64,000 nucleotides of DNA, taken from IMG/VR virus record IMGVR_UViG_3300024999_000030, positions 124,001-188,000 of that record. One strand, 5' to 3'. Position 1 is the first letter of the stretch. Every line of letters begins with the position of its first letter. This document shows positions 6,422 through 56,473 of the stretch, one piece after another. The notes beneath the pieces were generated by a model, which worked only from the letters and a program-made list of their open reading frames with translations, made no database searches and was not told the DNA's origin. Position numbers and translations under genes: made by a program.

Positions 6422-8083
6422 ATGAGTACGCCCAAGAAAGTATATCTTAAAGAAGAAGCTCAGCGACTTTTAAGTAAAGGGGTAAATACAATTACAGATG
6501 TGGTGGCCTGCACTTTAGGTGCTCAAGGCCGAGTTGTAACTATTGACCGTGGCCGTTATGGTACTACCGTTACAAAAGATGGGGTCACTGTCGCCAATGA
6601 AACTATTTTGGAAGATCCAGCTGAAAATATCGGCGCCGACATGATAAGAACCGCCGCTAATACAACAAATGACACCGCTGGAGACGGGACCACCACCGCA
6701 GCAGTCTTAACTAGAGAAATCTATAATGAGGGTCGAAGGGCCATGGCAGTAGGTGTAAACATTGCCGAATTAAGACGTGGCATTAACGCCAGTAAGGATG
6801 TTGCTGTTTCAGAATTAAAACGTTTAGCTACTTCCGTGAAAGATGGTGATATTCAAAAAATTGCCACTATTTCTGCTAACAATGACGATATCACTGGGGC
6901 TATTATTGCAGAAGCAATTAACAGGGTTAATAACGGTGTAGTAACGGTTGAGTTATCTCAGACAGCTGAGACTTATTATTCTTTAACAGAGGGCTTCCAA
7001 TTTGACAAAGGATTACCAACACCATATTTTGTAACTGATCAAATTAGAAATATTACTGAGTTTGAAGATGCATATATTCTCATTACTATGCATAAATTGA
7101 TGGCCGCTGAACCATTGGTCAATTTATTGAATGAAGTTAGTAAATCTAAAAAACCTCTTTTAATTATTGCCGATGGCTTTAGTAATGAAGTTCTTCAAAC
7201 GCTTGTCTATAATAAAATGAAGGGCGCCGTACAAGTTGCCGCTGTAAGCACCCCAGGCTATGGTGAGGCTAAAATTCAACTTTGTGAAGATATGGCAGCT
7301 TTAACTGGAGCACAATTTGTAGACCCAGAGGTAACTAATATTAATGATGTTTCTTTGGCATATTGTGGTCAAGCTAAAAAAATCATTTGTACTAAATTTA
7401 GCACCACGATTATGGGTGGGGGCGGAAACAAAGAAGTAGTGGATCAACGTATGGATAGAATTAAATATGCGTTGGCTCAAGAGCATTTGGCTCCCTTTGA
7501 AATTGATCAACTTAGAGATAGATTAAGTAGATTGCAGGGCGCCGTTGCGGTTATTCATGTTGGTGGTCTTAACGAAGAAGAAGCGAATGAAGCTAAAGAT
7601 AGAGTGGAAGATGCTGTTCATGCCACTCAATCTGCTATGGAAGAGGGTATCCTTCCAGGTGGTGGTCTTGCTTTCCTATATGCTTCCAAGGCAGTGGAAA
7701 CGGCAATGGAAAATCAAGCACATAAAGATGCTAAAATTGGATTTGATATTATTCGGAAGGCTTTAAAGGCCCCATCGCGTCAAATTGCAGCAAATGCTGG
7801 CTTAGACCCAGCGACAGAAGCGGTCACTAAAGCACTAGAGGCTTATCCCCAGCAATATGGTTATGGTTTTAATGCTGCTACGGAACAATATTCTAATTTA
7901 ATAGATGATGGGGTAATTGACCCAGCAAAAGTGAGTAGAGCAGCTCTAGAAAATGCCGTATCTGTTGCCCTGCTTATGCTTACCACGGACGCTCTCCTTG
8001 TAGAAACTGCATTTAGAGAAGACGATCCTAGAGTGGATAAAGTGGCTCGCCCAAGGGTTATGATGCAAAAACACAATCAATAA
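6422..8083 (+). CDS. groEL: Group I chaperonin GroEL (phage-encoded)
   Basis: TLGAQGR, TKDGVTVA, AGDGTTTA, GFQFDKG, EEGILPGGG, GVIDPAKV motifs; no GGM tail. Confidence 0.96.
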   Translation: MSTPKKVYLKEEAQRLLSKGVNTITDVVACTLGAQGRVVTIDRGRYGTTVTKDGVTVANETILEDPAENIGADMIRTAANTTNDTAGDGTTTAAVLTREIYNEGRRAMAVGVNIAELRRGINASKDVAVSELKRLATSVKDGDIQKIATISANNDDITGAIIAEAINRVNNGVVTVELSQTAETYYSLTEGFQFDKGLPTPYFVTDQIRNITEFEDAYILITMHKLMAAEPLVNLLNEVSKSKKPLLIIADGFSNEVLQTLVYNKMKGAVQVAAVSTPGYGEAKIQLCEDMAALTGAQFVDPEVTNINDVSLAYCGQAKKIICTKFSTTIMGGGGNKEVVDQRMDRIKYALAQEHLAPFEIDQLRDRLSRLQGAVAVIHVGGLNEEEANEAKDRVEDAVHATQSAMEEGILPGGGLAFLYASKAVETAMENQAHKDAKIGFDIIRKALKAPSRQIAANAGLDPATEAVTKALEAYPQQYGYGFNAATEQYSNLIDDGVIDPAKVSRAALENAVSVALLMLTTDALLVETAFREDDPRVDKVARPRVMMQKHNQ

Positions 8084-8143: not shown

Positions 8144-9541
8144 TTGAGTGCACGTAAAAATAGCTATGCATCTTATGACGATTTTTTACTAGATATTGGT
8201 GAATATTTTATAAGTTTAAACGCTGCGTTGTTTATGGAAACAGTACCTCCAACTGAAACAGCTAAAGCCTCTAAGAGAATAAAAACTTTAACGGGTTTAG
8301 TTGTTACGGCAACTACAGTTTCTACCTCAGCTAAAAAATTAAGAGTAATTGCGGAAAGGGAATATATAAAAATTGCAACAAAAATGAAAAGATCTTCAAA
8401 TCTTCCCACCACACAACTGATGTGTGATTTTCAATTATCAGAATTAGAAATGCTTATTCTTTTATATTTGTCATGGCAGGAAGTTGGGACTGACAATATT
8501 TTTATGTATATTAAAAATATCAGTCCAGTCCTTAAATTCTTTTCTAATAATGAAAAAGATGTAGTGTCTCGTTTAAAACTATTTAGTAATGATGCTAAAA
8601 TGATTAATGGCGGATTGTTGCATATCCAACAAAGTGAAAGTGCGCCTCTTGGGGCTTCTGATTTAATGGTGTTGGAGCCACTTAGAGAAATGTTAGCGGG
8701 GATGACGGATTATGATTTAGCGGTATTGCAACAAAAAAAGAAATGCAAAGACACATGTCAAACCGCTGGAACCATTACTCTTATAGCAAAAGAAGCTACT
8801 ATGGAACAGCTTCATATGACGGAAGCATATTTAAAACACTATAAAAAGATTTTTGTGGATTGGGCACTTGGGGAATCCATTCCATATGGAAGTGGTATGG
8901 TTATTTTATTTCATGGCCCCCCTGGCACAGGGAAAACCCTCGCCGCCCGTTATTTAGCCCAACGTTGCAAAAAAGAATTAATTGTAGTGGATTATGCTGA
9001 TTTACTTAATAAATATGTTGGTGAAACAGAAAAGAAAATTAAAGAAATGTTCAAACGCGCTGCAAAATCTGGAGCCGTGCTCCTAATTGATGAAGCTGAT
9101 AGTGTGATGCACGCTAGAGGCGATGATTCAAAGAGTTGGGAAATTTCACAGGTCAACGTATTGCTTCAGTGTGTGGAAGCTCATGATGGTGTGGTGATTT
9201 TAACTACCAATCGTGAGGAATTATTAGATAAAGCGTTAATGCGTCGTGTTATTCTTAAAGTAGCATTTGAAATGCCAGATGCTAGTCAACGCGCCAAAAT
9301 ATGGCAAACGATGCTTAAAGAGCAAGCAATTGATAAGGCGGTTGATTTTAAAATTTTAGGTGAAGAATTTATATATGCCGGTGGTAATATTAAAAATGCT
9401 GTGTTATTGGCGGCTATTCTTGCTGCCAACAAAGGTAAAGAGAAGATTGGTATGGATGATTTACGTGAAGCCGCTATGTTAGAAAAGAAAAAAGTTACAC
9501 CGAAGGGTTCTAAAATTGGCTTCATGGGCGAATCAAAATGA
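8144..9541 (+). CDS. AAA+ ATPase with large N-terminal domain (SpoVK/Vps4/Afp15-like)
   Basis: Walker A FHGPPGTGKT, KYVGETEK, Walker B LLIDEAD, ILTTN, Arg finger ALMRR, GGNIKN. Confidence 0.88.
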   Translation: MSARKNSYASYDDFLLDIGEYFISLNAALFMETVPPTETAKASKRIKTLTGLVVTATTVSTSAKKLRVIAEREYIKIATKMKRSSNLPTTQLMCDFQLSELEMLILLYLSWQEVGTDNIFMYIKNISPVLKFFSNNEKDVVSRLKLFSNDAKMINGGLLHIQQSESAPLGASDLMVLEPLREMLAGMTDYDLAVLQQKKKCKDTCQTAGTITLIAKEATMEQLHMTEAYLKHYKKIFVDWALGESIPYGSGMVILFHGPPGTGKTLAARYLAQRCKKELIVVDYADLLNKYVGETEKKIKEMFKRAAKSGAVLLIDEADSVMHARGDDSKSWEISQVNVLLQCVEAHDGVVILTTNREELLDKALMRRVILKVAFEMPDASQRAKIWQTMLKEQAIDKAVDFKILGEEFIYAGGNIKNAVLLAAILAANKGKEKIGMDDLREAAMLEKKKVTPKGSKIGFMGESK

Positions 9542-9768
9542 AAAACTATGGCATGTATATATCCTGTCCCGCTTGTAAAGGTGACAGATTTTGGATTGCT
9601 TCTATTACAGATTTAAGTAAATGTAGCAAAGACCTTGATTTTATTAATAAAATAGCTTATATTGTAGATGGAACTTGTGAACAGTGTAATCATTTAGTTG
9701 CAGATATAAATGAACTAGAGGCTCTGTTAATCGGTTCCGAAGGAACGGGGAATGATAGAAAAGATTGA
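9538..9768 (+). CDS. Small Zn-finger protein
   Basis: CPAC...CEQC. Confidence 0.55.
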   Translation: MKNYGMYISCPACKGDRFWIASITDLSKCSKDLDFINKIAYIVDGTCEQCNHLVADINELEALLIGSEGTGNDRKD

Positions 9769-10384
9769 TAAATTAATTTTTATAGACACCGAAACTACAG
9801 GTCTTAGTCCAACAACACATGAAATTATTGAAATTGGTATAGTGCAGGTGGACCCAATTACGCTTAACGATTTTGATCAAGCGGAATACAAAGTCTTACC
9901 TCAGAGCATTGCCACGGCTGATGAGCGAGCCTTAGCCATGAATCATTATTCGTTTATGTCTTGGCGAGGAGCAAAACCCTTTCAAGATGAGGTTGGCCCA
10001 TATCTTTCTAAATTAAGCACTCCTAAATCTATTATATGTGGACATAATATAAAATTTGATATAGCTTTTTTAGAATCAATGTACAGTAAATATTCGCCAG
10101 AGTTATCTTTTTCATATGGTGGAACTCTTGATACTCAGTCTCTGGCCAAACACTTAGCCGTTGCTACTCCATCGTATAGATTAGGAGTTTTGTGTCAGAA
10201 ATTTGGTGTTGAAATTGAAACCAGTAAACAACACAGTGCATTATATGATATTTTAGCTAATGTGGCGCTTTTTAAATCTATGTTTCGTAATTATAGTATT
10301 CCATTGTCCGAGGCCATCGTGTTGGGGCCCTGCGGAAAGAAAAATCAAAAGAAAATCATTACAGCCACAAAAACAGTGAGCTAA
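9752..10384 (+). CDS. DEDDh 3'-5' exonuclease (DnaQ/epsilon-like)
   Basis: IFIDTETTGL, GHNIKFD, HSALYD. Confidence 0.9.
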   Translation: MIEKIDKLIFIDTETTGLSPTTHEIIEIGIVQVDPITLNDFDQAEYKVLPQSIATADERALAMNHYSFMSWRGAKPFQDEVGPYLSKLSTPKSIICGHNIKFDIAFLESMYSKYSPELSFSYGGTLDTQSLAKHLAVATPSYRLGVLCQKFGVEIETSKQHSALYDILANVALFKSMFRNYSIPLSEAIVLGPCGKKNQKKIITATKTVS

Positions 10385-10398
10385 GAAAGGAAGACATC

Positions 10399-13300
10399 GT
10401 GGGATATAATAGTAAGGATATTAAGGTCCTTAAGGGCCTGGATCCTGTTCGTCAACGCCCTGGTATGTATATTGGAAACACGGATGACGAGACAGGAACT
10501 CATCAAACTGCATTTGAAATTATAGACAACGCAATAGACGAGGCCATGAACGGCTATGCCGATTTGGTCGCTGTCACCGTTCATGCGGATGGAAGTCTTT
10601 CTGTGCGCGATAATGGTCGGGGCGTGCCTGTGCAGATGCATCCTACCGAGAAAAAATATGGTGTTGATCTTGTTTTTACAGTACTTCATGCTGGCGGAAA
10701 ATTTGACGAACAGGCATATAAAACATCTGGTGGTCTTCACGGCGTGGGAGCCTCAGTGGTCAACGCTCTTTCTGAATGGCTTAAAGTTGAAGTAAAAAGA
10801 GATGGCAGGAAATATTTTAGAGAATATGCTAATGGTAATCCTATTGGCGAACTTCAGGATCTCGGTCCAAGTAAGAAAACCGGCACTATCGTTACATTTA
10901 AACCGAGCGTTAAGGTGTTTAGAAAGCCGGAATTTAGCTTTGAAATATTAAAAAATAGATTAGAAGAATTAGGCTTTCTCAATGAAGGCGTTGCTATTAA
11001 ATTAACCGATGAGCGCACCAATGAGGAATTTGAAGTTGGTCATAATGACGGTTTGAAACGTTTTGTGGAGAGAATTGAACCGAAGGCTCAAATTCTCACT
11101 CCTCTTATCCAAGTGTCTAGCGCCAAAGGCGAAAAAGTACGAGTGCGTTGTGCATTGCAGTGGAAGTTAGATTTTGATGGAGATAGGCTTCTCGCTTTTA
11201 CTAATAATATTCGTAATGGTGACGGCGGTACTCATGTAGTTGGTTTTAAAAATGTTTTAACACGATGTCTCACTAAAGCCCTAACGGGCAAAAAGGGAGC
11301 TAGCCTCGTTACTGGGGATGATGTTCGTGAGGGCCTTGTTGCTATTATTGATGTTAAAATGAGTGACCCTAAGTTTTCGTCTCAGGTTAAGTCAAAACTC
11401 GTTTCCGAAGAAGCTCGTACGGCATTGGAGAATATGTCTGGGGCCTTTGAAGATTATTTTGAAAAAAATCCAGCTCATTTAAATCGCGTAATGCAAAATG
11501 CCGTGAGAGCTGCGGAATCTAGGGAGGCAGCTCGTAAAGCAAGAGATTTATCTCGAAAGAAAAACGCAATGGATATCGGAGTTCTTCCTGGTAAATTAGC
11601 GGATTGTCAAAGTAAAGATCCAGCCATTAATGAATTATTCTTAGTTGAAGGAGATTCAGCCGGTGGAACAAGTAGACAGGGTAGGGATAGAAAATTTCAA
11701 GCGATTCTTCCATTGCGTGGTAAGGTAATCAACGCAGAAAAAGCGACCCTACATAAACTATTGGCAAATGAAGAAATTAAATCACTCATTGCTGCAATTG
11801 GAACTGGTATTGGAGAAAATTTCGATATTGAGCGTTTAAGATATCATAAGATTTGTATTATGACTGACGCCGATAGTGTTACTGGAGACACCCCCTTAAT
11901 GGTTTTTAATAAGGAAACCAAAGAAATGAAACTATATCGCACAGACGATTTTATTGATAATGTTTGTACGGATATTTCTAAATATCAGATAGTGGCATGT
12001 GATTTGAAACACAAGTCTTTTGGTTTTAGAAACTTACAACAAGTGTATAAGCATCCAAGTAAAAAGCAATTATTTAGAATTACAGATGACAATGGACATC
12101 ATGTAGATGTAACATCAGATCATAGTGTTTTTGTGTATCGGAAAGAAACAAGGTCATTTGAAGCCGTATCTACAGTGCGTCTTTCTGTCGAGGACCAACT
12201 CGTTTCATCTAGAGCTATACCAGATATTACAACAACAGAAATGAAAATTAATCCATATTTGCTTGGTTTATTTATTGGTCATGGGCAAGTAGATAGTCAA
12301 GGTCATTTCAAATTACTGCGTAGTACGAGATTTAAACAACGGGCTGTGGATTTCAACAGCTTACCAGCAGTAAAAATTACCACTACAGATAGAGTAGCTC
12401 AAACAGAAACGTTGGAATTTACCAATAAACGTATTTCAACAATGATATCCAGTTTTAATATTACTAAATCTGAATTACCAAATTGTTTGTATACGGCACC
12501 AACGGCCCAAAAATTAGCTTTTCTGCGTGGTTTATTGGAGTCATGCGCAGCGGTGATGGTTCACCAGGGTATATCTATTTGTGCTGAAGATTCATTGGCT
12601 ACTGGGTTGATCTATCTACTGAGACAATTTGGAGTGTCTCCAGCTATTCTTAGAGGTGGGGCCAAGGCATTAATCAATATTAAAATTAAAGATATGGCAT
12701 TCATTGCTGGGGCCTGGGATCATCATAAAGCAGTTAAAGATTTTGGTGATCTTGTTGCTCCATCCAAAGAATATGAATTGGTAAAAATTAAATCAATTGT
12801 GGAGCTTCCTCAACAACCATATGTTTACGATTTGTCTGTGGATGTGGATCAGAATTTTGTGGCAGGAACGGGAGCAACTCTCTTACACAACACCGATGGG
12901 GCCCACATTAAAACGCTATTGTTGACTTTCTTTTATCGACATATGCCAGAGTTAGTGAAAAAGGGACATATTTATATCGCTCAGCCGCCACTATATCGTT
13001 GTGTTATTCGTGGTAAGGTGCATTACATTTTGAACGATGGGGAATTAAGATTGTTTAAGGTAAAAGAAAAATATGGATTACTTAGAACTTATAAAAAGGG
13101 TAAAAAATATGCTTTTCCACAAGAACAAATTTTTGATATGCCAAAGGGAACTCTTTTATATTCAGATAAACTACTATTTGATGTTCCCATAGAAGATATT
13201 ATGAAACTAGTTACAGAACCAAGAGAAGATCTTAAGCTTCAGCGGTTCAAAGGGTTGGGAGAGATGGCAGCAGAACAATTAGCTGAAACCACTCTAAACC

Positions 13301-13443
13301 CATCTAGCAGAAGAATGTTACAAATTAAAATAGAATCAACAGAAGCTGCAGATAACATGATTACAACTTTGATGGGTGATGACGCAGAGGCTCGTCGCAC
13401 CTTTATTATGGAAAATTGCCAATTCGCTACTCCAGACGTGTGA
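10399..13443 (+). CDS. gyrB: DNA gyrase subunit B interrupted by an intein
   Basis: RPGMYIG, EIIDNAIDE, GGLHGVG, VEGDSAGG, PLRGK, IMTDAD|intein|TDGAHI, QRFKGLGEM. Confidence 0.95.
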   Translation: MGYNSKDIKVLKGLDPVRQRPGMYIGNTDDETGTHQTAFEIIDNAIDEAMNGYADLVAVTVHADGSLSVRDNGRGVPVQMHPTEKKYGVDLVFTVLHAGGKFDEQAYKTSGGLHGVGASVVNALSEWLKVEVKRDGRKYFREYANGNPIGELQDLGPSKKTGTIVTFKPSVKVFRKPEFSFEILKNRLEELGFLNEGVAIKLTDERTNEEFEVGHNDGLKRFVERIEPKAQILTPLIQVSSAKGEKVRVRCALQWKLDFDGDRLLAFTNNIRNGDGGTHVVGFKNVLTRCLTKALTGKKGASLVTGDDVREGLVAIIDVKMSDPKFSSQVKSKLVSEEARTALENMSGAFEDYFEKNPAHLNRVMQNAVRAAESREAARKARDLSRKKNAMDIGVLPGKLADCQSKDPAINELFLVEGDSAGGTSRQGRDRKFQAILPLRGKVINAEKATLHKLLANEEIKSLIAAIGTGIGENFDIERLRYHKICIMTDADSVTGDTPLMVFNKETKEMKLYRTDDFIDNVCTDISKYQIVACDLKHKSFGFRNLQQVYKHPSKKQLFRITDDNGHHVDVTSDHSVFVYRKETRSFEAVSTVRLSVEDQLVSSRAIPDITTTEMKINPYLLGLFIGHGQVDSQGHFKLLRSTRFKQRAVDFNSLPAVKITTTDRVAQTETLEFTNKRISTMISSFNITKSELPNCLYTAPTAQKLAFLRGLLESCAAVMVHQGISICAEDSLATGLIYLLRQFGVSPAILRGGAKALINIKIKDMAFIAGAWDHHKAVKDFGDLVAPSKEYELVKIKSIVELPQQPYVYDLSVDVDQNFVAGTGATLLHNTDGAHIKTLLLTFFYRHMPELVKKGHIYIAQPPLYRCVIRGKVHYILNDGELRLFKVKEKYGLLRTYKKGKKYAFPQEQIFDMPKGTLLYSDKLLFDVPIEDIMKLVTEPREDLKLQRFKGLGEMAAEQLAETTLNPSSRRMLQIKIESTEAADNMITTLMGDDAEARRTFIMENCQFATPDV
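11875..12891 (+). mobile_element. 339-aa intein (Ser1...His-Asn, +1 Thr) with degenerate LAGLIDADG endonuclease
   Basis: Block A SVTGDTP; block B VTSDHSVF; block F VYDLSV; block G LLHN/T; HEN-like blocks YLLGLFIGHG and FLRGLLESCA. Confidence 0.92.
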
Positions 13444-14541: not shown

Positions 14542-15258
14542 ATGTCAGACAATGAAGTAGCAGGTATTGTGACTCAATTAGAAAGTCTACATACTAAACA
14601 TAAGGTAAGTAGCTACATCGGGCTTGGATTAGTGTTGTTAATATTGTTTTTTGCTGGTGTTGGAGCTTATATGCTTATGGGTCAACTTAAGGATCAAGCT
14701 GCAACAAATCAACAACTCGCCGCAACGCAGCAGCAAATTACTGATAAATTACAAACAATAGATACAAATAATCAAATTATTTTTGACCTTAAAAAGGAAA
14801 TTCAAGATATTAAAACTCAACAACAAATTACCACTGCTAAATATGATGTTTTATTAACACAAGCTGGTAGACAACTTCCCCAGCCACAACAAGATGCCTT
14901 TTTCACCTCTCGTGGTTTTATTCCCTCTTATTATCAAACAGATGGTGGTAGATTGTTTGGATCACAGGCTACAGTTAAGCTTCAAACGGCAATTGTGGAA
15001 GGTGAGAAGTGTGAAGAGTTGTCTGCTCAAAAGGATATCGAAATTGTTAAAAAAGATAATCTTATCGATACATATCAGAAACAAGTAATTGAATATCAGG
15101 GTGTTGATGGATTAAGGCAAGAAGAATTTAAAATTGTTGATAATGAACTTAAAAAAACACAAAAAGAATTGCGACGTGAAAAAATTAAAAAGTGGTTATG
15201 GACGTGCGCTAGTATTTCCGCTGCGGGATATGTCGGGTATCAAGTCGGCCATAACTAA
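14542..15258 (+). CDS. Membrane-anchored coiled-coil protein (spanin-like architecture possible)
   Basis: N-terminal TM helix, Q/K/E heptads, hydrophobic C-terminus. Confidence 0.5.
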   Translation: MSDNEVAGIVTQLESLHTKHKVSSYIGLGLVLLILFFAGVGAYMLMGQLKDQAATNQQLAATQQQITDKLQTIDTNNQIIFDLKKEIQDIKTQQQITTAKYDVLLTQAGRQLPQPQQDAFFTSRGFIPSYYQTDGGRLFGSQATVKLQTAIVEGEKCEELSAQKDIEIVKKDNLIDTYQKQVIEYQGVDGLRQEEFKIVDNELKKTQKELRREKIKKWLWTCASISAAGYVGYQVGHN

Positions 15259-44374: not shown

Positions 44375-44389
44375 TATGGCCTCACTATC

Positions 44390-44418
44390 AATATAATTTG
44401 AACGTTGTTAATTGTCAA
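44390..44418 (-). promoter_or_regulatory. Promoter TTGACA-N17-TATATT
   Basis: Exact spacing; heads the long leftward transcription unit. Confidence 0.72.
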
Positions 44419-44574
44419 GTAAGAGTCGATGATAATTAAATAAGGATAATAATGGGGCCGCCGTTAAGAGGATACTGTATAGGATTGATATGGGTATTGT
44501 ATGGATATTGGGTATTTAAACAGGAGGTTATAAAGAGATCGGTGTAATAATGTAAAGGCTTATGAATACTGAAT

Positions 44575-44890
44575 AAGTGAGTCATTTATGACACAGTATA
44601 ATAATAAGATAAGTGAAATAATATAGAGAGGAGTTAGGAGAGAGTTAGGAGAGAGATACTGAGTTGTGTCTACAAAAATGACACATGTGACTTAAATGAC
44701 ACACTGGCGTATAATAGATAAGTGAAATTTATAATGAAATGACATTAAGATAACTATTAGATACTGGTAAAAGTGAGTCATTTATGACACACTTTACTAA
44801 TAGTATGAGCGGTTAAGTGCGATAATATGAGATAATATGAAGAATATATACTGATAATCAACATGTGACAAAAATGACTCACTTTCACTT
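44575..44890. repeat. Iteron-like cluster: aagtgagtcatttatgacac x2 (44575-44594, 44771-44790) plus an inverted variant (~44860-44889)
   Basis: Identical 20-mers with internal palindrome gtcat-tt-atgac, in an AT-rich non-coding divergent region. Confidence 0.75.
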
Positions 44891-45088
44891 AAGTTGTGAA
44901 AATACTACCCCCCAGACAATAAGAGTCTGAGGTAATATCAGTATCTCCCCGCCCTAAGTCTAAGCCAAGCATCAAGCGACTTACACTTGTAAAGAGTTTG
45001 GCCAGTATCAAAGTATAGCGTGACGCTGTGTCATGCTAGATACTGGCGCGAGTGTAAGAGACTTAGATACTGGCCAAAGGAGTTAAAG

Positions 45089-46317: not shown

Positions 46318-49300
46318 ATGGCTTATCATAAGTCTCAACGCCGCAATCTCAAACCTACAACCATCAGACAGTATCATTATGCTGTAAGCCGGCTTCTCAA
46401 TGCTTGCCCTCCCAATCTTCTCATACAAGTTATGAAAATGATTCGGGCAGGAGCAAAGACTTACCCAGTGTCTAAGATTCAATCTTTCATGGCCGGTAGT
46501 GGATTCTACATGTATTCACGAGAGATTAACAAAGCCATCAACGCTATGCAATGGGGATTATGCCCGCCTCAATATCGCATCTCCAAGAATAATCGCTGGT
46601 ATTTGGATACATTCCCTCAAGAGCCTGGACCGGTTGCTTATGCTGCCATGGAAACGGTCAGTATCAATCATCCAATTACTGCCCCCACACTTCAACCTGC
46701 CATGAACATTGTGTAAATAAAGATACTGGTCTGTAATTCTACCAGTATCTTACCTTCGCCGCCTAGTTACTTTGCATAGTGCAGGGAAACTTCGGCGCGA
46801 TCATAGGCTAATACAAGGAGGACAATATGGATTACGGGTAGCTAAGCTCAAACCTTAATTCAGTGTCTAGAGATGGCGGTCAGTATCGTCCAGTACAAAT
46901 GATTATAAACACTGGGATACTGGCCGTCACACTGTAGATACTGGACAAAACTTTCAATAGGAGGAGGCTACAATGGCCTACACACTATATAATCCACCGA
47001 CTAAGTGGTGGAAAAGGCAACACAGTATCACAATAACTATCTGGCCTAAGTGGTTAGCTCAGAAGCTTTGCAATCACTCTGCACCTAAACCTTCATGGAT
47101 TACTTCAAACACTTGCTACTCTTGCCCGGACTGTTACACTCTTATGATTCCTCCAGGAGCAGTCACCACGAAGGAATAGGGAGCGAGGTGAACGATGAAC
47201 GAGCAACCCAATAGTTCCATCTCAATCGTCCGTTACTCCAGAGATGGCTTCGTGGCTAAACGGCAGTCCAAACATATGTATAATGTTTGGCATGAGCTGT
47301 TTAAGTTTAATAGCCATGACATGCCAGAACATCTTCGTGGTGTCAGCGTAGAAGCACACCATAAGATCGTCCCTTTCTATCGTGAACACCTCGCTGATTT
47401 TAACTGGGGCATCTGGGTATTCATAGAGGGACACGATAACATGATGTCTCTCAATCATCTGCACGGTCAAGATAGGATGGGGCTTAAGCGTTGGACTGCT
47501 GTAATTCCCAGTAACACAGAGGTTTACGGTGTGGGGTGGGATGTCATTGTCTCTATTAGTGATTTCATTCCACAGATGTTCGGCTGCTTCATACCCAAAC
47601 GAAACATTCCTCTCATCACGGATATCAAGTGTGACGATGAATGTGATGTGGAGTTAGAGCTAGAGAGGTATGACTGGGAGCGTGAAGAAGAGAATCGCAT
47701 GCTCCGTTGTGGGTATTAGAAAGGAGGTGTCTTAAGTTGCCAGTCTTCATCGTTCAACAACTCGAAGGCGTCCACTGGTTTGATTCCGGTGATCATGGGG
47801 CCTGTCTGACGCGAATCCTTTCCAGCCAGAGAGAGGGGCTGGAGTTTGCGAGGGATGTTACCAGACGAACACAATTCGAAACCCGAGTAGTGGAGACAGA
47901 CAAAAACCGAATTGTTTACAACGTCTGGTCTCCGCACGCTCCATAACAATCCGTTCTTCACAGAGTACTCCTGTTAAAGGGAGTACTCAATCCCGTCAAT
48001 GTATACTAGCTGGTGGGACGGGGTAAGAGCACAATATATAGTAGTGCTCAGGCTAGTATGCCACAACATATAGGAGAACACATGAACATCAGTCGGCGTA
48101 AGAGGGGTTACATAAATCAGAGAGGAGGATAACAATGAATAGGGCTGATGTCCTCTTGATACTGGACGAAAAGTTTGCCAAGAAGGTGACGGATGAATAC
48201 AAGAAACGCACTGGATACAGTAATGTAATCGGTAGCGTTTCTAGCAATATGAAAGTCTTTATCCCCATCATTAAAGATATTCTTGATGATGGGCTTCGTG
48301 TACAAGAAGAAAACGAAAGAGAGGTGCGACATGATAAAAGTTGAACCGATGGAACCGCTGGACACAGAAAACTACGCCGTGCCCTTGAATCCTTTTCATC
48401 AAGACATATACAGTATGGGGACGACGCTGGGGACAAACGTGACGGTGATGTACGGAAATCATACTCACACTCATCAACCTTACATCATCGTTGTTAACCT
48501 GGATACTGGCGAACGAATCAAGATCGCTTTCTGAAAGGGAGGTGTGTCATGAACGAAAAGGAAAAGAACAGGATGCGACGATTATTGGAAATGGCTTATT
48601 TGTTTGCATGGGGTCCAGATGGTACGGCTGACCGCAGAGATGAATGGTGGGAACTTAAAGCTTTACTTCCCAACGTAGGAACGATGTGTTATGGTGGTAA
48701 TGGTAAATTCCGATGGGACGAATGAGCCAAATAGGTTCAGTTCTTTTTCATAAGGAGGCGTGCCATGGAACCGATCTTTGTTAACAATTGGGGCGAAATA
48801 CGAGGCGGTATCTCAGTGGATGAAGTCTTGAAGGGGGATGGTAAGCTAGCTGGCTTTACTGTCTCTGGCAAGAATCAAGATGGTAAGGAGTTCTGCATTG
48901 ACTTCTTCGTTCATGTTGGTGCCAAAAACATCACCATCACTTGCAGCTAAGGGAGGAGGAACTACATGGAATGGAAAGTCGTTGATACTGGCGATGAAAT
49001 CACCATCGTTCCTGAAACCCGCAATCTCCCCGGCAAAGTTCTTTTCGTCGGAACCTCAGTGGATTGCGATGAATATCTATATGAACTGAGCAACGACGAA
49101 TAACCTAACCCCATAAGGAGGCTCAACATGGAATGCGGATATCTAATTGCGTGGGTCGGTCCTTGTAAAAGCCAACCATCGGACGACAGTTCGTGCCGAT
49201 GTGACAAACACAAGGACAAAGTCTGTGCATCTTGTGGTGCTCCAGCCACTCAGGAATGCGATACGACGGGACAGTTCGTTTGTGGTGCTCCTCTCTGCAA

Positions 49301-50004: not shown

Positions 50005-50054
50005 ACCAGTATCTCTATAGTCTTAAAGATACTGGCGAAGTAATAGATACTGAG

Positions 50055-50920
50055 CATGGATGACACGTGACTCAGTTCTATAGGTAAGCCTAGCATATAG
50101 CATGTAGCGTCTCCTATAAGAGGCACGTGACTATATGTTGTCGGATGGTGGCTAGGCATGTCGGGTAGCAGGCGGGTGGCTAATCCGATACTTCAGTTTC
50201 AATCATCGCACGTCACCTACTAAATAAGTGGTACGGCGGTAGTTGATTAGAGCCCATTTTAATCGCGTGACGATGATTCAGGGTAGGTCCAGTGACTCCT
50301 GCAATACACTTACCTCTGACGGGCTGATAACCCCTCATGCGAGTAATGTGACGGGAGACCATAGCACATGAATGCCCTTATCCCTATAGGGGACGGAACG
50401 TATGTGACTATGAGAATCGTCCAGAGTAAGAGCCTGGATGATAGGAGAGACGCGTAAGCGACTCTAAAGACTGGACGAATTAGACGGCAGGTGGGTGGCC
50501 AGTCTAATGGGTTTGCAAAACTATTCTACTGCATGGAGGGACGGCAAAAGCCCTTCCCAGTTTCCGTTAAGCGGTGCTGACCGTGACGGTGGAATAGTTT
50601 AAAGGGTAGGCTTAGAAATATACCACATGGAGAAGACACCCCAATCGAGTGGAGTCAGTCATATAGATGGCCTGTGATGGTATAGGGGCTTATGGAGAGT
50701 AAGCCAGGCTAAGCGGTTAGGGTGAGCAGGTGAGTGGCTTCCTAACACTTAAGTTAAACTGGTGTCTATCATATAGGTAGCGTCCGGTAGAGTCCGGTGT
50801 GTATGATGGGCCAGGAAAGGTAAGCGAGGAGATGGCATCGTAGATGTGGGAGTTTTCTTCCTATGGTGCAGATTAGGCGGTCCTCGCGTGGCGTCAGCAG
50901 GTGGGTGGCAGGCGCTCTCG
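50055..50920 (+). ncRNA. Candidate large structured non-coding RNA (~870 nt)
   Basis: No ORF >=60 aa in the track; many nested stems with G-U pairs; four GC-AGGYGRGTG-GC stem-loops. Confidence 0.72.
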
Positions 50921-50943
50921 GAATAATATGAAAGGAGGCGGCT

Positions 50944-51294
50944 ATGACTTCAAGAGAAAATCTTCAAAGAATTAATGAAGCAATCAAAGCCGCTAAACAT
51001 TTAATTAAACACCCCCATAGTAAATCGGCATGGGGGAGTTTAGATTATAACACTCTGCCAATAGGCAATTATTCATCAAAAGGATTTACTTGTCCAATAA
51101 GTTGTGATAATTGTCCACTGGCATTGGGAATAACTCCGTTGAATCTTCCTGAGTTTATTTGTGAGGGTAATGCCCATGACATTATAATGGAAAAACAAAT
51201 CATGGGAGAGGTTATATTACTTCTCATTCAATTTGTGGCCACTATGGAAGTAGTCCAGGAGGATATTAAAAGGGGCCAAGGAGGTACAACATGA
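50944..51294 (+). CDS. Cys4-family paralog
   Basis: CPISCDNCPL...FIC...GEVILLLIQFVA. Confidence 0.8.
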   Translation: MTSRENLQRINEAIKAAKHLIKHPHSKSAWGSLDYNTLPIGNYSSKGFTCPISCDNCPLALGITPLNLPEFICEGNAHDIIMEKQIMGEVILLLIQFVATMEVVQEDIKRGQGGTT

Positions 51295-51593
51295 GAAAAT
51301 TAAATAATAAAGAAAGACGAGCACAGATAGAAGCAGTAAAACAATTATTAGATGACGTTAAAGATATTTATCTTTGGAGATAATTACATTCTGTTACTGG
51401 ATTCTTTAATTCAATAGATTTCTGTCCGGACCTTCCTGGTCAAATTTTAAGGTGTCTGCATTGTCCCTTAAGATTGAACTCAGCAACTCATTTATGTCGA
51501 TATAGACATCAGAATTATAAGGAAGTCATAATATCGGATGGTGAAATAACCATTAGGCTTCTGGAGTTTCTAGCCTATATACAAATAACCTAA
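51291..51593 (+). pseudogene. Cys4-family paralog with in-frame TAA at 51381-51383
   Basis: ...IYLWR*LHSVTG...CPDLPGQILRCLHCPLR...HLCRY...DGEITIRLLEFLAYIQ. Confidence 0.8.
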
Positions 51594-51609
51594 CGAAAGG
51601 AGGCTTCAG

Positions 51610-52023
51610 GTGAGAAAATGTAATGGATGTAAGCAGACCAAAGATGAATATTACATGCTTAAACCTGAAGTCTGGATACAGGCATGTATGAAGCCCGTTA
51701 AAAACATCCCAGTAATATCTGTCCTACGCATGCTTTGTGTATCATGTGTAGAAAAGAGACTGGGAAGGGAACTTAACTGGCGGGACTTTGCTCTTTGCCG
51801 ACTTAACTTGGACCCATCTGAACCGAGAACGGCTATACTTCAAGATCGAATGAGTGGTATAACCAATCGCCTTCCACAGTGGTTCTTCAATAGATACGGT
51901 GAAGATCAATGGGATGTGTCGGCCTTAGCTTATGGATGGCCACTGAGAGGAGGATGCAATGAAAAACACACCGATAGAAAAAGCAAAGCGGGCGGCGGAG
52001 TATCTAATCAAGCATCCTCATAG
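51610..52023 (+). CDS. Hypothetical phage protein
   Basis: C..C, YML...VW, LCVSCVEKRLGREL...DF. Confidence 0.6.
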   Translation: MRKCNGCKQTKDEYYMLKPEVWIQACMKPVKNIPVISVLRMLCVSCVEKRLGRELNWRDFALCRLNLDPSEPRTAILQDRMSGITNRLPQWFFNRYGEDQWDVSALAYGWPLRGGCNEKHTDRKSKAGGGVSNQASS

Positions 52024-53528
52024 TAGAATCGCTTGGGCTATGTTAAGCGATAATACTTCTCCTTCGTGGGGCAATAAACTAATTCGGTGTCCATTTGATT
52101 GTTATAACTGCCCATTAAGAACTGGCGCAAATGAATTAGGTCTTCAGACATATATATGTGGTAAGTCTGATTTTGAATCCAAGAGTGGTAATTTATTCGG
52201 AGAGGTTATATTGTACCTCATCCAATTTGTTGCTTTTGTGGAAGCGTTTCAAGGGGCAAAGCCATGATAATCACATTTAAAAGTGTCATCAACATGCCTG
52301 ATTAGATTCATTGCCTTTGCTCAGGTGGAAGTGGAGGATTCCCATGAAAGTCCCAGATAAAGAGGATAGGCAATTACAACTCACGACGATTTACGACCTG
52401 ATAAATAACTTGGATGATCCCAAGTATTGGAGAAGACTTTGGAACGTTACTGGGGGGCACTATGAGGAGCCAAAAGCAGAATGGAAAGATTTTTGTCCAT
52501 CTATTGATGGTTCGCTCCGGTGCTATAATTGCCCCCTTCGAGTGTTGGGTGAACATTATCAAGTCAACTATCTCTGTCGCCATAGTGGTTCTAACAAACC
52601 TGATCCAGCTAATGGAGAAGTCCTTCGTAGGTTATTGGAGTTTCTAGCCTACTCACAATTATAAGGAGGGTCCAAATGAAATGAGAGGATATGAAATAAG
52701 GACCCAGGAACAAATGGAACATCAAATAAAAGTAGCCCAAGCATTACTTAACGACTTAAGTAATGTGAATCTATGGAAGGAACTGTCTCGTATAACTGGA
52801 CTACAACCAGTCGTAGTAAGTAAAACTAGATTAACTAAGACTGATTACTGTCCAGGTTTATCCGTCTCAACTCCCTCACGGTGTAAAATCTGTCCTCTTT
52901 GTCTCCCTAGAGCCCAAGTACCTGGACAAACTTCAAAATGGGATTACTATCTCTGCCGAAGGTATATGTCTCATGAAAAATTGTGTCCAGAGATAGAAGA
53001 TGGGGAAGCGACTCGTAGGCTATTGGAATTCATAGCCTTCATACAAATACAACCCGACTCATAGGAGGTGACGATGAAAATCTCTCGCGTTCCATCACAG
53101 TTCGCCCCTGGTCGCTACAACGATGAATTCGTTTATAGGGAGGTGATCATGAAGCATGGTGTTACATGACCAACTCAAATAGTACAACCCCCATCAAAAT
53201 CATCAAAGAAATCCCTGAAGAACAAATCAAAGCAGCCCAGTATCTAATCAATCACATTGATGATCCTGAAGGCTGGAAACGCTTGCAGGAAGTAACTGGT
53301 GATACTGGGATCTTTGAATCCACAATCGATCACTGTGGCGACAATGCATACTCTGGAAGGCTGCCACAGATCACATGTTCAGCGTGTCCCCTCAGGGTAG
53401 AAAGTAGCACATATCTCTGCCGATATAGTCACCCAAATTATCCTCATGTCAATATGGAGGACAGTGCGATAATTCTGAAACTGATAGAGTTTATCGCATA
53501 TGTTCAAACAGTTTTTCCTAAGGCATGA
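51959..53528 (+). CDS. Four tandem Cys4-family paralogs (51959-52267, 52344-52664, 52681-53064, 53166-53528)
   Basis: C..CxxCPL..Y(L/I)C..GE...L(L/I)(E/Q)F(I/L/V)A in each. Confidence 0.8.
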
Positions 53529-53846
53529 GATATACTTGGAAGGAATGCAGAGAGTTAATTAGCTGCTGCACTTAAAGTAGTAGCTAAGCCACGATCCAAG
53601 AAAGCCTGGAAGGAACTGGGTAAAGTTACTGGTGTGAATTATCGCACACCCGACAATAGTCTAGTCGGGAAAGAAGTCGATTTTTGTAAGAAGGCTTGTT
53701 CCAAATGTCCCTTGTATGTAAAGAGAGCGGTATACATTTGCCGCAAGGACATTTGGCCAGAAATGTTGATAGACGTTAGTGAGGGCGAAATCCTTCGTCA
53801 CTTGCTAGAGTTTATCGCTCACATCCAAATACAGGAGGAGCAGGAC
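53525..53846 (+). pseudogene. Cys4-family paralog with a +1 frameshift near 53560 and no stop before ORF 53847
   Basis: ATGA overlap start MRYTWKECRELI; other frame continues AAALKVVAKPRSKKAWKELGKVTG...CSKCPL..YIC..EGEILRHLLEFIA. Confidence 0.65.
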
Positions 53847-53984
53847 ATGGCAAACGCATCTCAACTCCGTCGGGCCAAAGCGAACAAACTCACCGCCACC
53901 CAGGAACGCAAGCAGTCTCTCAAGGCTAATCGTGTCTTCGGACAGACGAGGACGACGATGCCAAGGAAGTCCAAGAGCCGTTAG
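53847..53984 (+). CDS. 45-aa basic peptide with its own RBS
   Basis: ggaggag then ATG; MANASQLRRAKANK. Confidence 0.55.
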   Translation: MANASQLRRAKANKLTATQERKQSLKANRVFGQTRTTMPRKSKSR

Positions 53985-54108
53985 TCTCCGTTAGTATTCA
54001 GAGCCAGTGGGCCAGTATCTTATAATGTAACAATCTCAACAATGAGATACTGGCTCATTGTAATGTGGATACTAACTCTGGGGCGAAAGTTTAAATGGGA
54101 GGTGGACA

Positions 54109-55809: not shown

Positions 55810-55885
55810 GGGTCGTTAGCTTAGCATTGAAAGCCATCGGCTCATAACCGATAGATCACAGGTGAGAATCCTGTACGACCCACCA
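55810..55885 (+). tRNA. tRNA with CAT anticodon (elongator Met or Ile2), atypical elbow
   Basis: Acceptor gggtcgt/acgaccc + ACCA; anticodon arm atcgg-ctcataa-ccgat; T arm acagg-tgagaat-cctgt. Confidence 0.85.
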
Positions 55886-55886
55886 T

Positions 55887-55961
55887 GGGCCCGTAACTCA
55901 ATGGTAGAGTATCGCCCTTTTAAGGCGAGAGTTGAGGGTTCGAGTCCCTCCGGGCCCACCA
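55887..55961 (+). tRNA. tRNA-Lys(TTT)
   Basis: Acceptor gggcccg/cgggccc + ACCA; tcgcc-cttttaa-ggcga; TTCGAGT. Confidence 0.95.
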
Positions 55962-55999
55962 CTTATCTTATACAGGCGAACGCCAGGAAGGAGGTAACC

Positions 56000-56380
56000 G
56001 TGCCGTGCGATTGCGGTAATTGCCATTTCGGATTCAACTGTTCCAAAGAGTGGCAGACTCTCCACCCCGGAACGACCTGGTACGCCTGCGAGTTCTGCGG
56101 ACTCTATCAGGCTTCAGCTCCCATGTGTAACAAGTGCGAGCTGCAGGAGGAAGAGACCAAGTCCGGTATGAAGAGGTACGAGTTCCAGCGGCGCTCCCCA
56201 TTCTCTGGTAAGATTCACACCATGACCATCCAGATGACGGAGCAGCAGTTCGCGGAACTCTCCCAGCCCAACGGTCGTCACATCCAGGACATCCTCCCCC
56301 ATTGCACCCCCGATGAGAGGGAGTTCATCATGACCGGTATCACTCCCGAGGAATGGGAGCAGACCTTCGGGAAGAAGTAG
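56000..56380 (+). CDS. Cys-rich N-terminus plus conserved phage domain (IQ...P...EREF..TG.T..EW)
   Basis: RBS ggaggt before GTG 56000. Confidence 0.65.
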   Translation: MPCDCGNCHFGFNCSKEWQTLHPGTTWYACEFCGLYQASAPMCNKCELQEEETKSGMKRYEFQRRSPFSGKIHTMTIQMTEQQFAELSQPNGRHIQDILPHCTPDEREFIMTGITPEEWEQTFGKK

Positions 56381-56387
56381 TTACTTT

Positions 56388-56473
56388 GCGGCTGTGGTGG
56401 AATGGCATACACTACAGACTTAAAATCTGTCGGTCGTAAGACCTTGCGGGTTCGAATCCCGCCAGCCGCACCA
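56388..56473 (+). tRNA. tRNA-Leu(TAA), long variable arm
   Basis: Acceptor gcggctg/cagccgc + ACCA; acaga-cttaaaa-tctgt; TTCGAAT. Confidence 0.95.

Follow-up and report, generated by a model that had tools for sequence, protein, structure and literature searches.

The DNA analyzed here (the window, 64,000 nucleotides) is part of the 332,730 bp IMG/VR contig UViG_3300024999_000030, with which the region is identical, and identical copies are present in several assemblies and runs of groundwater metagenomes (2014-2017). The window encodes GroEL, DnaJ, an AAA ATPase, IMP dehydrogenase and a GyrB homologue with an intein (10399-13443, 1014 aa; the splicing domain spans residues 527-831), and the best match of its GroEL belongs to a 735 kb uncultured phage. 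This set of chaperone and enzyme genes, taken with the GroEL match, identifies the source as a huge phage of approximately 333 kb from groundwater. At 45 kb the GC content jumps from about 0.33 to about 0.5, and the genes run rightward from that point on. The divergent intergenic region in which leftward genes give way to rightward genes (44375-45019) coincides with this jump and holds several GTGAGTCATTTATGACACA-like and AAATGACACA motifs, probably repeats that serve as operators or promoters.

The longest gap in the window without an ORF of at least 60 aa lies at 50005-50943 (939 nt) and has a GC content of 0.48 and a GC skew of +0.21. It is preceded by genes for a conserved 53-aa product and a 94/95-aa product, and is followed by an array of Cys-rich paralogs, a basic protein and a phosphoribosyltransferase. 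No Pfam family was matched by the ten neighboring ORFs, and no toxin, reverse transcriptase, Cas or transposase genes were found nearby. Three tRNA genes (Met-CAT, Lys-TTT and Leu-TAA; 55810-56473) lie 5 kb downstream, past the phosphoribosyltransferase-like gene. The features of the gap and of the gene that follows it are as follows, all on the + strand.

50006-50014 / 50027-50035, +: hairpin P1 of the 5' element, strands CCAGUAUCU and AGAUACUGG, followed by the second GATACT box at 50046-50051
50050-50137, +: two tandem hairpins, 60 nt apart, each with CAUG/CGUG and a bulged A; pairings read from the sequence
50050-50075, +: first tandem hairpin, CUGAG-CAUG...CGUG-A-CUCAG
50094-50137, +: second tandem hairpin, CAUAUAG-CAUG...CGUG-A-CUAUAUG
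50161-50188, +: G-loop hairpin W1, UCGGGUAGC-AGGCGGGUG-GCUAAUCCGA
50199-50508, +: module M1
50201-50212 / 50266-50278, +: M1 helix Pb, AAUCAUCG-CACG and CGUG-A-CGAUGAUU
50280-50287, +: M1 linker, AGGGUAGG
50287-50293 / 50470-50476, +: M1 helix Pa, GUCCAGU and ACUGGAC
50479-50508, +: M1 G-loop hairpin W2
50509-50746, +: module M2
50518-50536 / 50581-50600, +: M2 helix Pb, CAUGG/CCGUG with a bulged A
50603-50610, +: M2 linker, AGGGUAGG
50610-50615 / 50709-50714, +: M2 helix Pa, GCUUAG and CUAAGC
50620-50630 / 50672-50683, +: M2 inner helix Pd, AUACCA-CAUGG and CUGUG-A-UGGUAU
50716-50746, +: M2 G-loop hairpin W3
50747-50916, +: module M3, a degenerate module copy
50766-50774 / 50801-50809, +: M3 helix Pb, CUAUCAUAU and GUAUGAUGG
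50810-50823, +: M3 purine-rich linker, ending in AAAGGUAA
50824-50829 / 50882-50887, +: M3 helix Pa, GCGAGG and CCUCGC
50890-50916, +: M3 G-loop hairpin W4
50931-50938, +: SD, AAAGGAGG
50944-51294, +: first Cys-rich gene, ATG at 50944, 116 aa

Four copies of the 13-mer GCAGGYGRGTGGC lie on the + strand of the window (50168, 50487, 50726 and 50897), and all of them fall within 50168-50909, inside the ORF-free gap. Only 0.05 copies are expected by chance in 64 kb, none of 100 shuffles gave four, and no further copy was found in the window with one mismatch permitted. The initial annotation had listed these 13-mers together with their flanking stems; its positions and letters are exact and the stems that it quoted are correct. 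Successive copies are spaced by 319, 239 and 171 nt, and the repeat family is 13-17 nt long. Folded in isolation, each of the four segments forms a hairpin in which a G-C and a C-G pair close a 9-nt loop, with energies of -8.3 to -9.8 kcal/mol.

The product of the first Cys-rich gene has a single relative outside the source phage, 51% identical, on a 172,952 bp JGI contig (L002). The 770-nt gap upstream of this relative (9231-10000) is likewise non-coding and aligns with the region in the window, and the gene order described above is common to both phages. The short ORFs of the two gaps are not homologous and no conserved ORF was found in the region; a protein-coding gene or repeat protein was rejected on this ground, together with the absence of ORFs at the 60-aa cut-off. 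L002 carries three G-loops, at 9520, 9740 and 9963, as one copy of GCAGGCGGGTGGC and two of GCAGGAGGGTGGC, on stems that differ from one another. Eleven of the 13 positions in the loop and closing pairs are the same in all seven copies, giving the loop consensus A-G-G-N-G-R-G-U-G closed by two G-C pairs (individual loops AGGCGGGUG, AGGUGGGUG, AGGUGAGUG and AGGAGGGUG), while the stems differ in sequence and are uniform in length, with 9-10 stacked layers in 7/7 hairpins. The initial annotation's observation of a conserved loop on non-conserved stems is thus supported, as is selection at the RNA level: L002 adds three further copies, whose stems differ by compensatory changes. Its description of the stems as unrelated holds for their sequences, but the hairpins do not stand alone: each is the last element of one of a series of tandem homologous modules. 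Blocks of 16-18 nt, including AGCGACTCTAAAGACTGG, AGGGTAGGTCCAGTGA and AGGCTAAGCGGTTAG, are identical between the two RNAs beside a flanking protein that is only half identical, an observation that we count in favor of selection on the RNA.

Both RNAs begin with P1 and the second GATACT box, followed by three tandem homologous modules. The P1 stem is identical in L002 (9244-9272), where the second GATACT box stands at 9283. In each module, CAYG follows the 5' strand of helix Pb and leads into an inner domain, which is succeeded by CGUG, one bulged nucleotide (A, except for a single U) and the 3' strand of Pb; the second half of the module consists of the linker AGG(G)UAGG, helix Pa around a second inner domain, 1-3 nt, and the G-loop hairpin. 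M1 was delimited with verified coordinates and its L002 helices keep their pairing through compensatory changes; M2 is supported by an inverted repeat, the alignment fold, the helix comparison and the signature count. The signature CGTG[AT]CG..AGG(G)TAGG, present in M1 as CGTGACG..AGGGTAGG, has two copies in the window and three in L002, all of them on the + strand and inside the RNAs, against 0.005 expected per 64 kb; the L002 counterpart of M3 has it in full (CGUG-U-CGACAGU-AGGUAGG), with Pa formed by UUGGCC/GGCCGA. A second recurring element is the CAYG/YGUG helix with a U.G wobble and a 3' bulged A, of which there are about seven in the window RNA and five in L002. Its YGTGAC string occurs six times in the region against 0.32 expected, in every case as the 3' strand of a bulged-A helix. 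A kink-turn or C/D-box reading of the UGAUGA and CGUGAC strings was dropped, as the opposite strand lacks the required GA, and a pairing of the loops with the recurring UCACCUA motif was dropped for want of covariation with the L002 loop variants.

The window RNA has an additional 5' part (50040-50198) that appears in the alignment as an insertion relative to L002 and comprises the two tandem hairpins, in which CACGTGACT recurs at 50064 and 50124, and W1, a fourth G-loop without a positional counterpart in L002. Near W1, the almost identical segments GUCGGAU (50141-50147) and GUCGGGU (50160-50166) can each pair with AUCCGAU (50183-50189). The competing fold buries the G-loop, is the one adopted in the minimum free energy (MFE) structure of the whole region and has no equivalent in L002; this alternative pairing may act as a switch. 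W2 and the L002 hairpin L2 (9732-9761) are alike at 30/31 nt although they belong to non-orthologous modules (M1 in the window, M2 in L002), which suggests copying or gene conversion among modules.

The pairing was assessed over 16 helices that are present in both sequences and were chosen by hand, with verified coordinates. Their 86 orthologous pairs divide into 58 identical, 7 with a change on one side that still pair, 21 compensatory and 0 broken, counts that represent one pairwise comparison between two distinct sequences over helices of our own choosing. When the 3' strands were slid by 1-3 nt as a control, 1-4 pairs were compensatory and 60-69 broken. RNAalifold run on the raw alignment gave double changes at 37/123 pairs. 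The helices contain 14 G.U pairs and no A.C oppositions, which identifies the folded molecule as the + strand RNA. The fold z-score of the window is also stronger on the + strand (-5.7, against -2.85 on the - strand); for L002 the scores are good on both strands. When the whole RNAs (939 nt in the window) were folded without constraint, the G-rich segments found distant partners and did not form the local hairpins (W2 with 50878-50894 and, in L002, L1 with the L2 hairpin and L3 with 9457-9474). These long-range pairings were dropped, as the partners are not homologous between the two phages. With only the two closing pairs of each loop imposed, the window RNA loses 14.7 of its 349 kcal/mol and the L002 RNA 5.9 of its 307 kcal/mol, and the folds obtained in this way reproduce the module model. 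Since the MFE partners are not homologous and the forced pairs are cheap, the comparative evidence favors formation of the local G-loop hairpins. Taken together, these results make it very probable that 50005-50943 specifies a real, selected, structured RNA.

This structured RNA of about 0.9 kb, on the + strand, is previously undescribed; its family, which is absent from Rfam, is known from two members, each carried by a huge phage of subsurface water. The window gave no Rfam match at the gathering score, and cmscan with permissive filters and E up to 10 returned only chance-level matches for either RNA (sR58, CRISPR-DR9, MIR162_1 and Yar_2). No covariance model in Rfam 15 for riboswitches, T-boxes, ribozymes, introns, tmRNA or RNase P matches, nor do those for GOLLD, ROOL, OLE, raiA or HEARO. 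A CRISPR repeat mimic acting as an RNA anti-CRISPR does not fit an RNA in which the loop is conserved and the stems are not; the sole CRISPR-DR match (E = 7.6) falls on the - strand of another part of the region. Searches with the flanking proteins yielded L002 as the sole true relative, with nothing further from the upstream protein, and blastn of both RNAs against 50,697 phage records gave no match. Beyond these protein and blastn searches, relatives were sought by exact-pattern scans only. In IMG/VR, patterns of two G-loops at four spacings, two conserved blocks or a single extended loop recovered the source phage and chance matches only, and the module signature, sought in GTDB genomes, yielded 11 chance matches in coding DNA and no RNA. 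A metagenome scan for two G-loops 197-227 nt apart returned 37 loci, three of which are the source phage at 100% identity; the remainder were rejected, some as coding repeats of the PD40 type (FSPDSRRVAY), which share nothing else with the RNA, and some as tandem repeats of other kinds. The 13-mer in fact recurs every ~117 nt in many unrelated bacterial contigs (L147, L149, L158, L161, L163, L172 and L174) because it encodes part of this PD40/TolB-type beta-propeller repeat, a pitfall for pattern searches with the 13-mer.

The RNA leads directly into the Cys-rich array: the end of W4 is 15 nt from the SD of the first gene, and the spacing in L002 is about as close. The array (50944-53984 in the window, 10001-12266 in L002, and also present in L180, L184 and L189) consists of 6-7 paralogs of 100-127 aa, which align through an invariant C...C..CP(L)...C pattern and a C-terminal LLEFIAYIQ-like helix. 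The paralogs have no Pfam match. An AlphaFold model of the Cys-rich protein is a helical bundle (pLDDT 87) with no PDB neighbor at E below 1, and the protein was dropped as a candidate RNA binder, the confident helical model having neither a PDB neighbor nor a recognizable RNA-binding domain. A profile of the family led to a third phage (Ga0373634_0000569) with dozens of tandem paralogs, within 10 kb of which there is no RNA of this kind, no large gap and no RNA motifs; an apparent module signature in this phage proved to be the HCxxGxxRS phosphatase active site. As the family occurs there without the RNA, and has no structural neighbor, the link between RNA and protein is positional only.

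The 5' edge of the RNA coincides with an element composed of the inverted repeat CCAGTATC...GATACTGG and, after 10-21 nt, a second GATACT, which also precedes window genes at 45003, 46881 and 54013 and is found at four places in L002, including that before the RNA:

45003-45071, window: CCAGTATC...GATACTGG with GATACT
46881-46942, window: the same element
50007-50051, window: the same element, at the 5' edge of the RNA
54013-54073, window: the same element
6514-6546, L002: the same element
7911-7971, L002: the same element
9244-9288, L002: the same element, before the RNA
14719-14752, L002: the same element

The elements stand before rightward genes, with an SD and start codon 20-40 nt past the second GATACT, and GATACT resembles a -10 hexamer. 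They are probably promoters or regulatory hairpins of this phage group, to judge from their sequence and placement, and we infer that the transcript probably starts just after the GATACT boxes, near 50050. In the window, the extended string GATACTG has 27 copies on the + strand and 22 on the - strand. No terminator-like site was found on the + strand of 50005-50943; with none before the first Cys-rich gene, the RNA may be a long leader, a processed product or both. No RNA run was found to contain the region, and four metatranscriptome runs yielded zero reads on it.

We tentatively favor, at somewhat less than even odds, a reading in which the RNA is a multivalent platform that presents one type of loop to a partner in trans. 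A + strand transcript of about 0.9 kb would start after the GATACT boxes near 50050 and run toward the first Cys-rich gene. Each module would fold on itself into two helix domains joined by the purine-rich AGG(G)UAGG linker and would end in a 9-10-layer hairpin displaying the AGGNGRGUG loop, so that one transcript could show three or four identical G-rich loops and bind several copies of one type of partner. Candidate partners are proteins and pyrimidine-rich RNAs, among the latter the 3' tail of 16S rRNA and regulatory RNAs rich in C. In favor of this reading we count the excess and conservation of the loop, the compensatory pairing, the strand signal, the module signature, the identical blocks, the uniform stems, the shared gene order and the lack of a conserved ORF. 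Against this reading, unconstrained folds pair the loops elsewhere, the neighboring proteins have no recognizable RNA-binding domain, shuffled loops pair with the anti-SD just as well, and the comparative support comes from the single pair of sequences and the hand-chosen helices described above.

Conserved loops in large RNAs are often internal tertiary contacts and not binding sites for outside partners. The G-loops could in the same way dock into a conserved receptor in their own or a neighboring module, or in a second molecule of the RNA, to form a particle that is compact or homo-oligomeric, as with ROOL, GOLLD and OLE, a reading that we regard as somewhat unlikely. It would suit an RNA that is large and helix-rich with strong fold z-scores, and the recurring CAYG/YGUG helices, with their U.G wobble and bulged A, are candidate receptors: their YGTGAC strands are the second conserved element to recur in the region, far above expectation, and a uniform stem length is what would be expected if the loop must reach a fixed receptor. 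RNA-only assemblies are, moreover, known for large phage-linked RNAs (PMC12286853). However, no complementary or covarying partner for the loop was found, and the variable N tracks nothing visible, although seven loops are too few for such a test. Neither RNA matches the ROOL, GOLLD, OLE or raiA models, to which tandem modules are foreign.

A cis-acting role is quite unlikely as the main function, although the RNA may possibly serve also as leader of the downstream Cys-rich array. In this model the SD-like loops would be 30S standby or capture sites, or a decoy, setting translation of the array; the short distance from W4 to the SD in both phages, with no intervening terminator, would be in keeping with it, as would the GGAGG-type SDs of the phage's own genes. 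Every loop is able to form pairs with GAUCACCUCCUUA, with energies from -7.9 to -10.3 kcal/mol (the real RBS reaches -11.6), and in the best register AGG-N-GGGUG pairs with CACCUCCU, leaving the variable N as a bulged base. The match of AGGUGA to the anti-SD complement, noted in the initial annotation, is real as sequence, but 27-46% of permutations of the same nine loop letters pair with the anti-SD as well or better, so that the complementarity follows from G-richness alone. It was dropped as specific evidence, and the anti-SD was kept as a possible partner. The center of the presumed SD helix is also the least conserved position of the loop, a three-module structure of 0.8-0.9 kb far exceeds the needs of a standby site, and the anti-SD is that of an assumed host 16S. 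Finally, that the repeats act as DNA (origin iterons, a packaging site or operators, the hairpins being incidental) is very improbable: four 13-mers in the same orientation within a long non-coding region, with GATACT boxes at its 5' edge, would fit such a role, but an AT-rich unwinding region is absent at this GC content and skew, and the repeat flanks stay complementary through 21 compensatory changes, with G.U and never A.C, which indicates a single-stranded + strand fold and not recognition of duplex DNA.

The RNA shares its display of loops with sponge RNAs and its size and ornateness with GOLLD and ROOL, and matches none of them in the features that define membership. The initial annotation had likened it to CsrB and to phage pseudo-ToxI RNAs. 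In CsrB, RsmY and RsmZ, as here, several short purine-rich motifs sit in hairpin loops on stems of unrelated sequence and many copies of a partner could be bound. The motif itself differs, however: these RNAs present A(N)GGA, whereas the 9-nt loops here carry AGGNGRGUG, and AGGA is present in only 2/7, both of them AGGAGGGUG loops of L002. The number of sites is also smaller (3-4 compared with 5-22), they end conserved modules of 170-310 nt in place of simple hairpins, there is no link to CsrA, and no Rfam model matches; the analogy thus fails. That with ToxI extends to a repetitive, phage-borne RNA that could titrate a protein and goes no further. ToxI consists of head-to-tail units of ~34-36 nt near the ToxN endoribonuclease or mimicking its partner, while the repeats here are 171-319 nt apart and alike only in the loop and a few blocks, and no ToxN/AbiE-like endoribonuclease gene was found beside the RNA among the ten neighboring ORFs, none of which has a Pfam family. 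The RNA may nevertheless act as a sponge, decoy or scaffold, as inferred in the initial annotation.

GOLLD, ROOL and OLE resemble the RNA in size class (0.6-0.9 kb), dense conserved structure and association with phages (PMC12286853). GOLLD and ROOL often occur near tRNA genes in phages (PMC12286853), and the three tRNA genes lie 5 kb downstream here. Unlike those RNAs, to which neither member has covariance-model similarity at E up to 10, the present RNA consists of homologous modules in tandem, in which one loop recurs.

Staphylococcus aureus RNAIII and similar RNAs carry one motif on several loops of a long RNA and base-pair with their targets. The polarity there is opposite, since C-rich loops pair with SDs, whereas the G-rich loops here would pair with pyrimidine-rich targets.

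There are few large structured RNAs with a conserved architecture, and the ones studied so far (GOLLD, ROOL, OLE and raiA) have yielded surprises that include RNA-only assemblies. The RNA described here is as large as these and matches none of them, and its build of three tandem modules, each ending in the same loop, is unusual. Huge phages carry many genes for the takeover of translation, and to our knowledge almost nothing is known of their non-coding RNAs. Multivalent display could be extended to a bolder proposal, that the RNA represents a new class of large, modular RNAs of phages and is its first member: its triplicated, self-folding module, with one and the same G-rich loop on display, would capture several copies of a host component during infection. 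Candidates for this component are the 30S subunit, bound by the 3' tail of its 16S rRNA, regulatory RNAs rich in C, and proteins of defense or translation. We consider this combined proposal unlikely as it stands; were it true, the RNA would be an RNA-only takeover or counter-defense device without known relative. The modular build offers an experimental handle, as the loops can be mutated singly or together. A ribosomal or defense-factor partner would mean a new phage use of RNA against the host, tertiary contacts would mean a new fold suited to structural work, and there is a fair chance of greater novelty once the partner or the three-dimensional structure is known.

A minor observation concerns the Cys-rich array itself. 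The paralog at 51291-51593 of the window contains an in-frame TAA (51381-51383) at a position occupied by R or E in other paralogs (YLWR*LHSVTG compared with YWRRLWNVTG), and none of the three tRNAs is a suppressor. The ORF is likewise 30 aa long on a short contig of independent origin (L179), and the interrupted paralog represents either a pseudogene or a read-through or recoding event.
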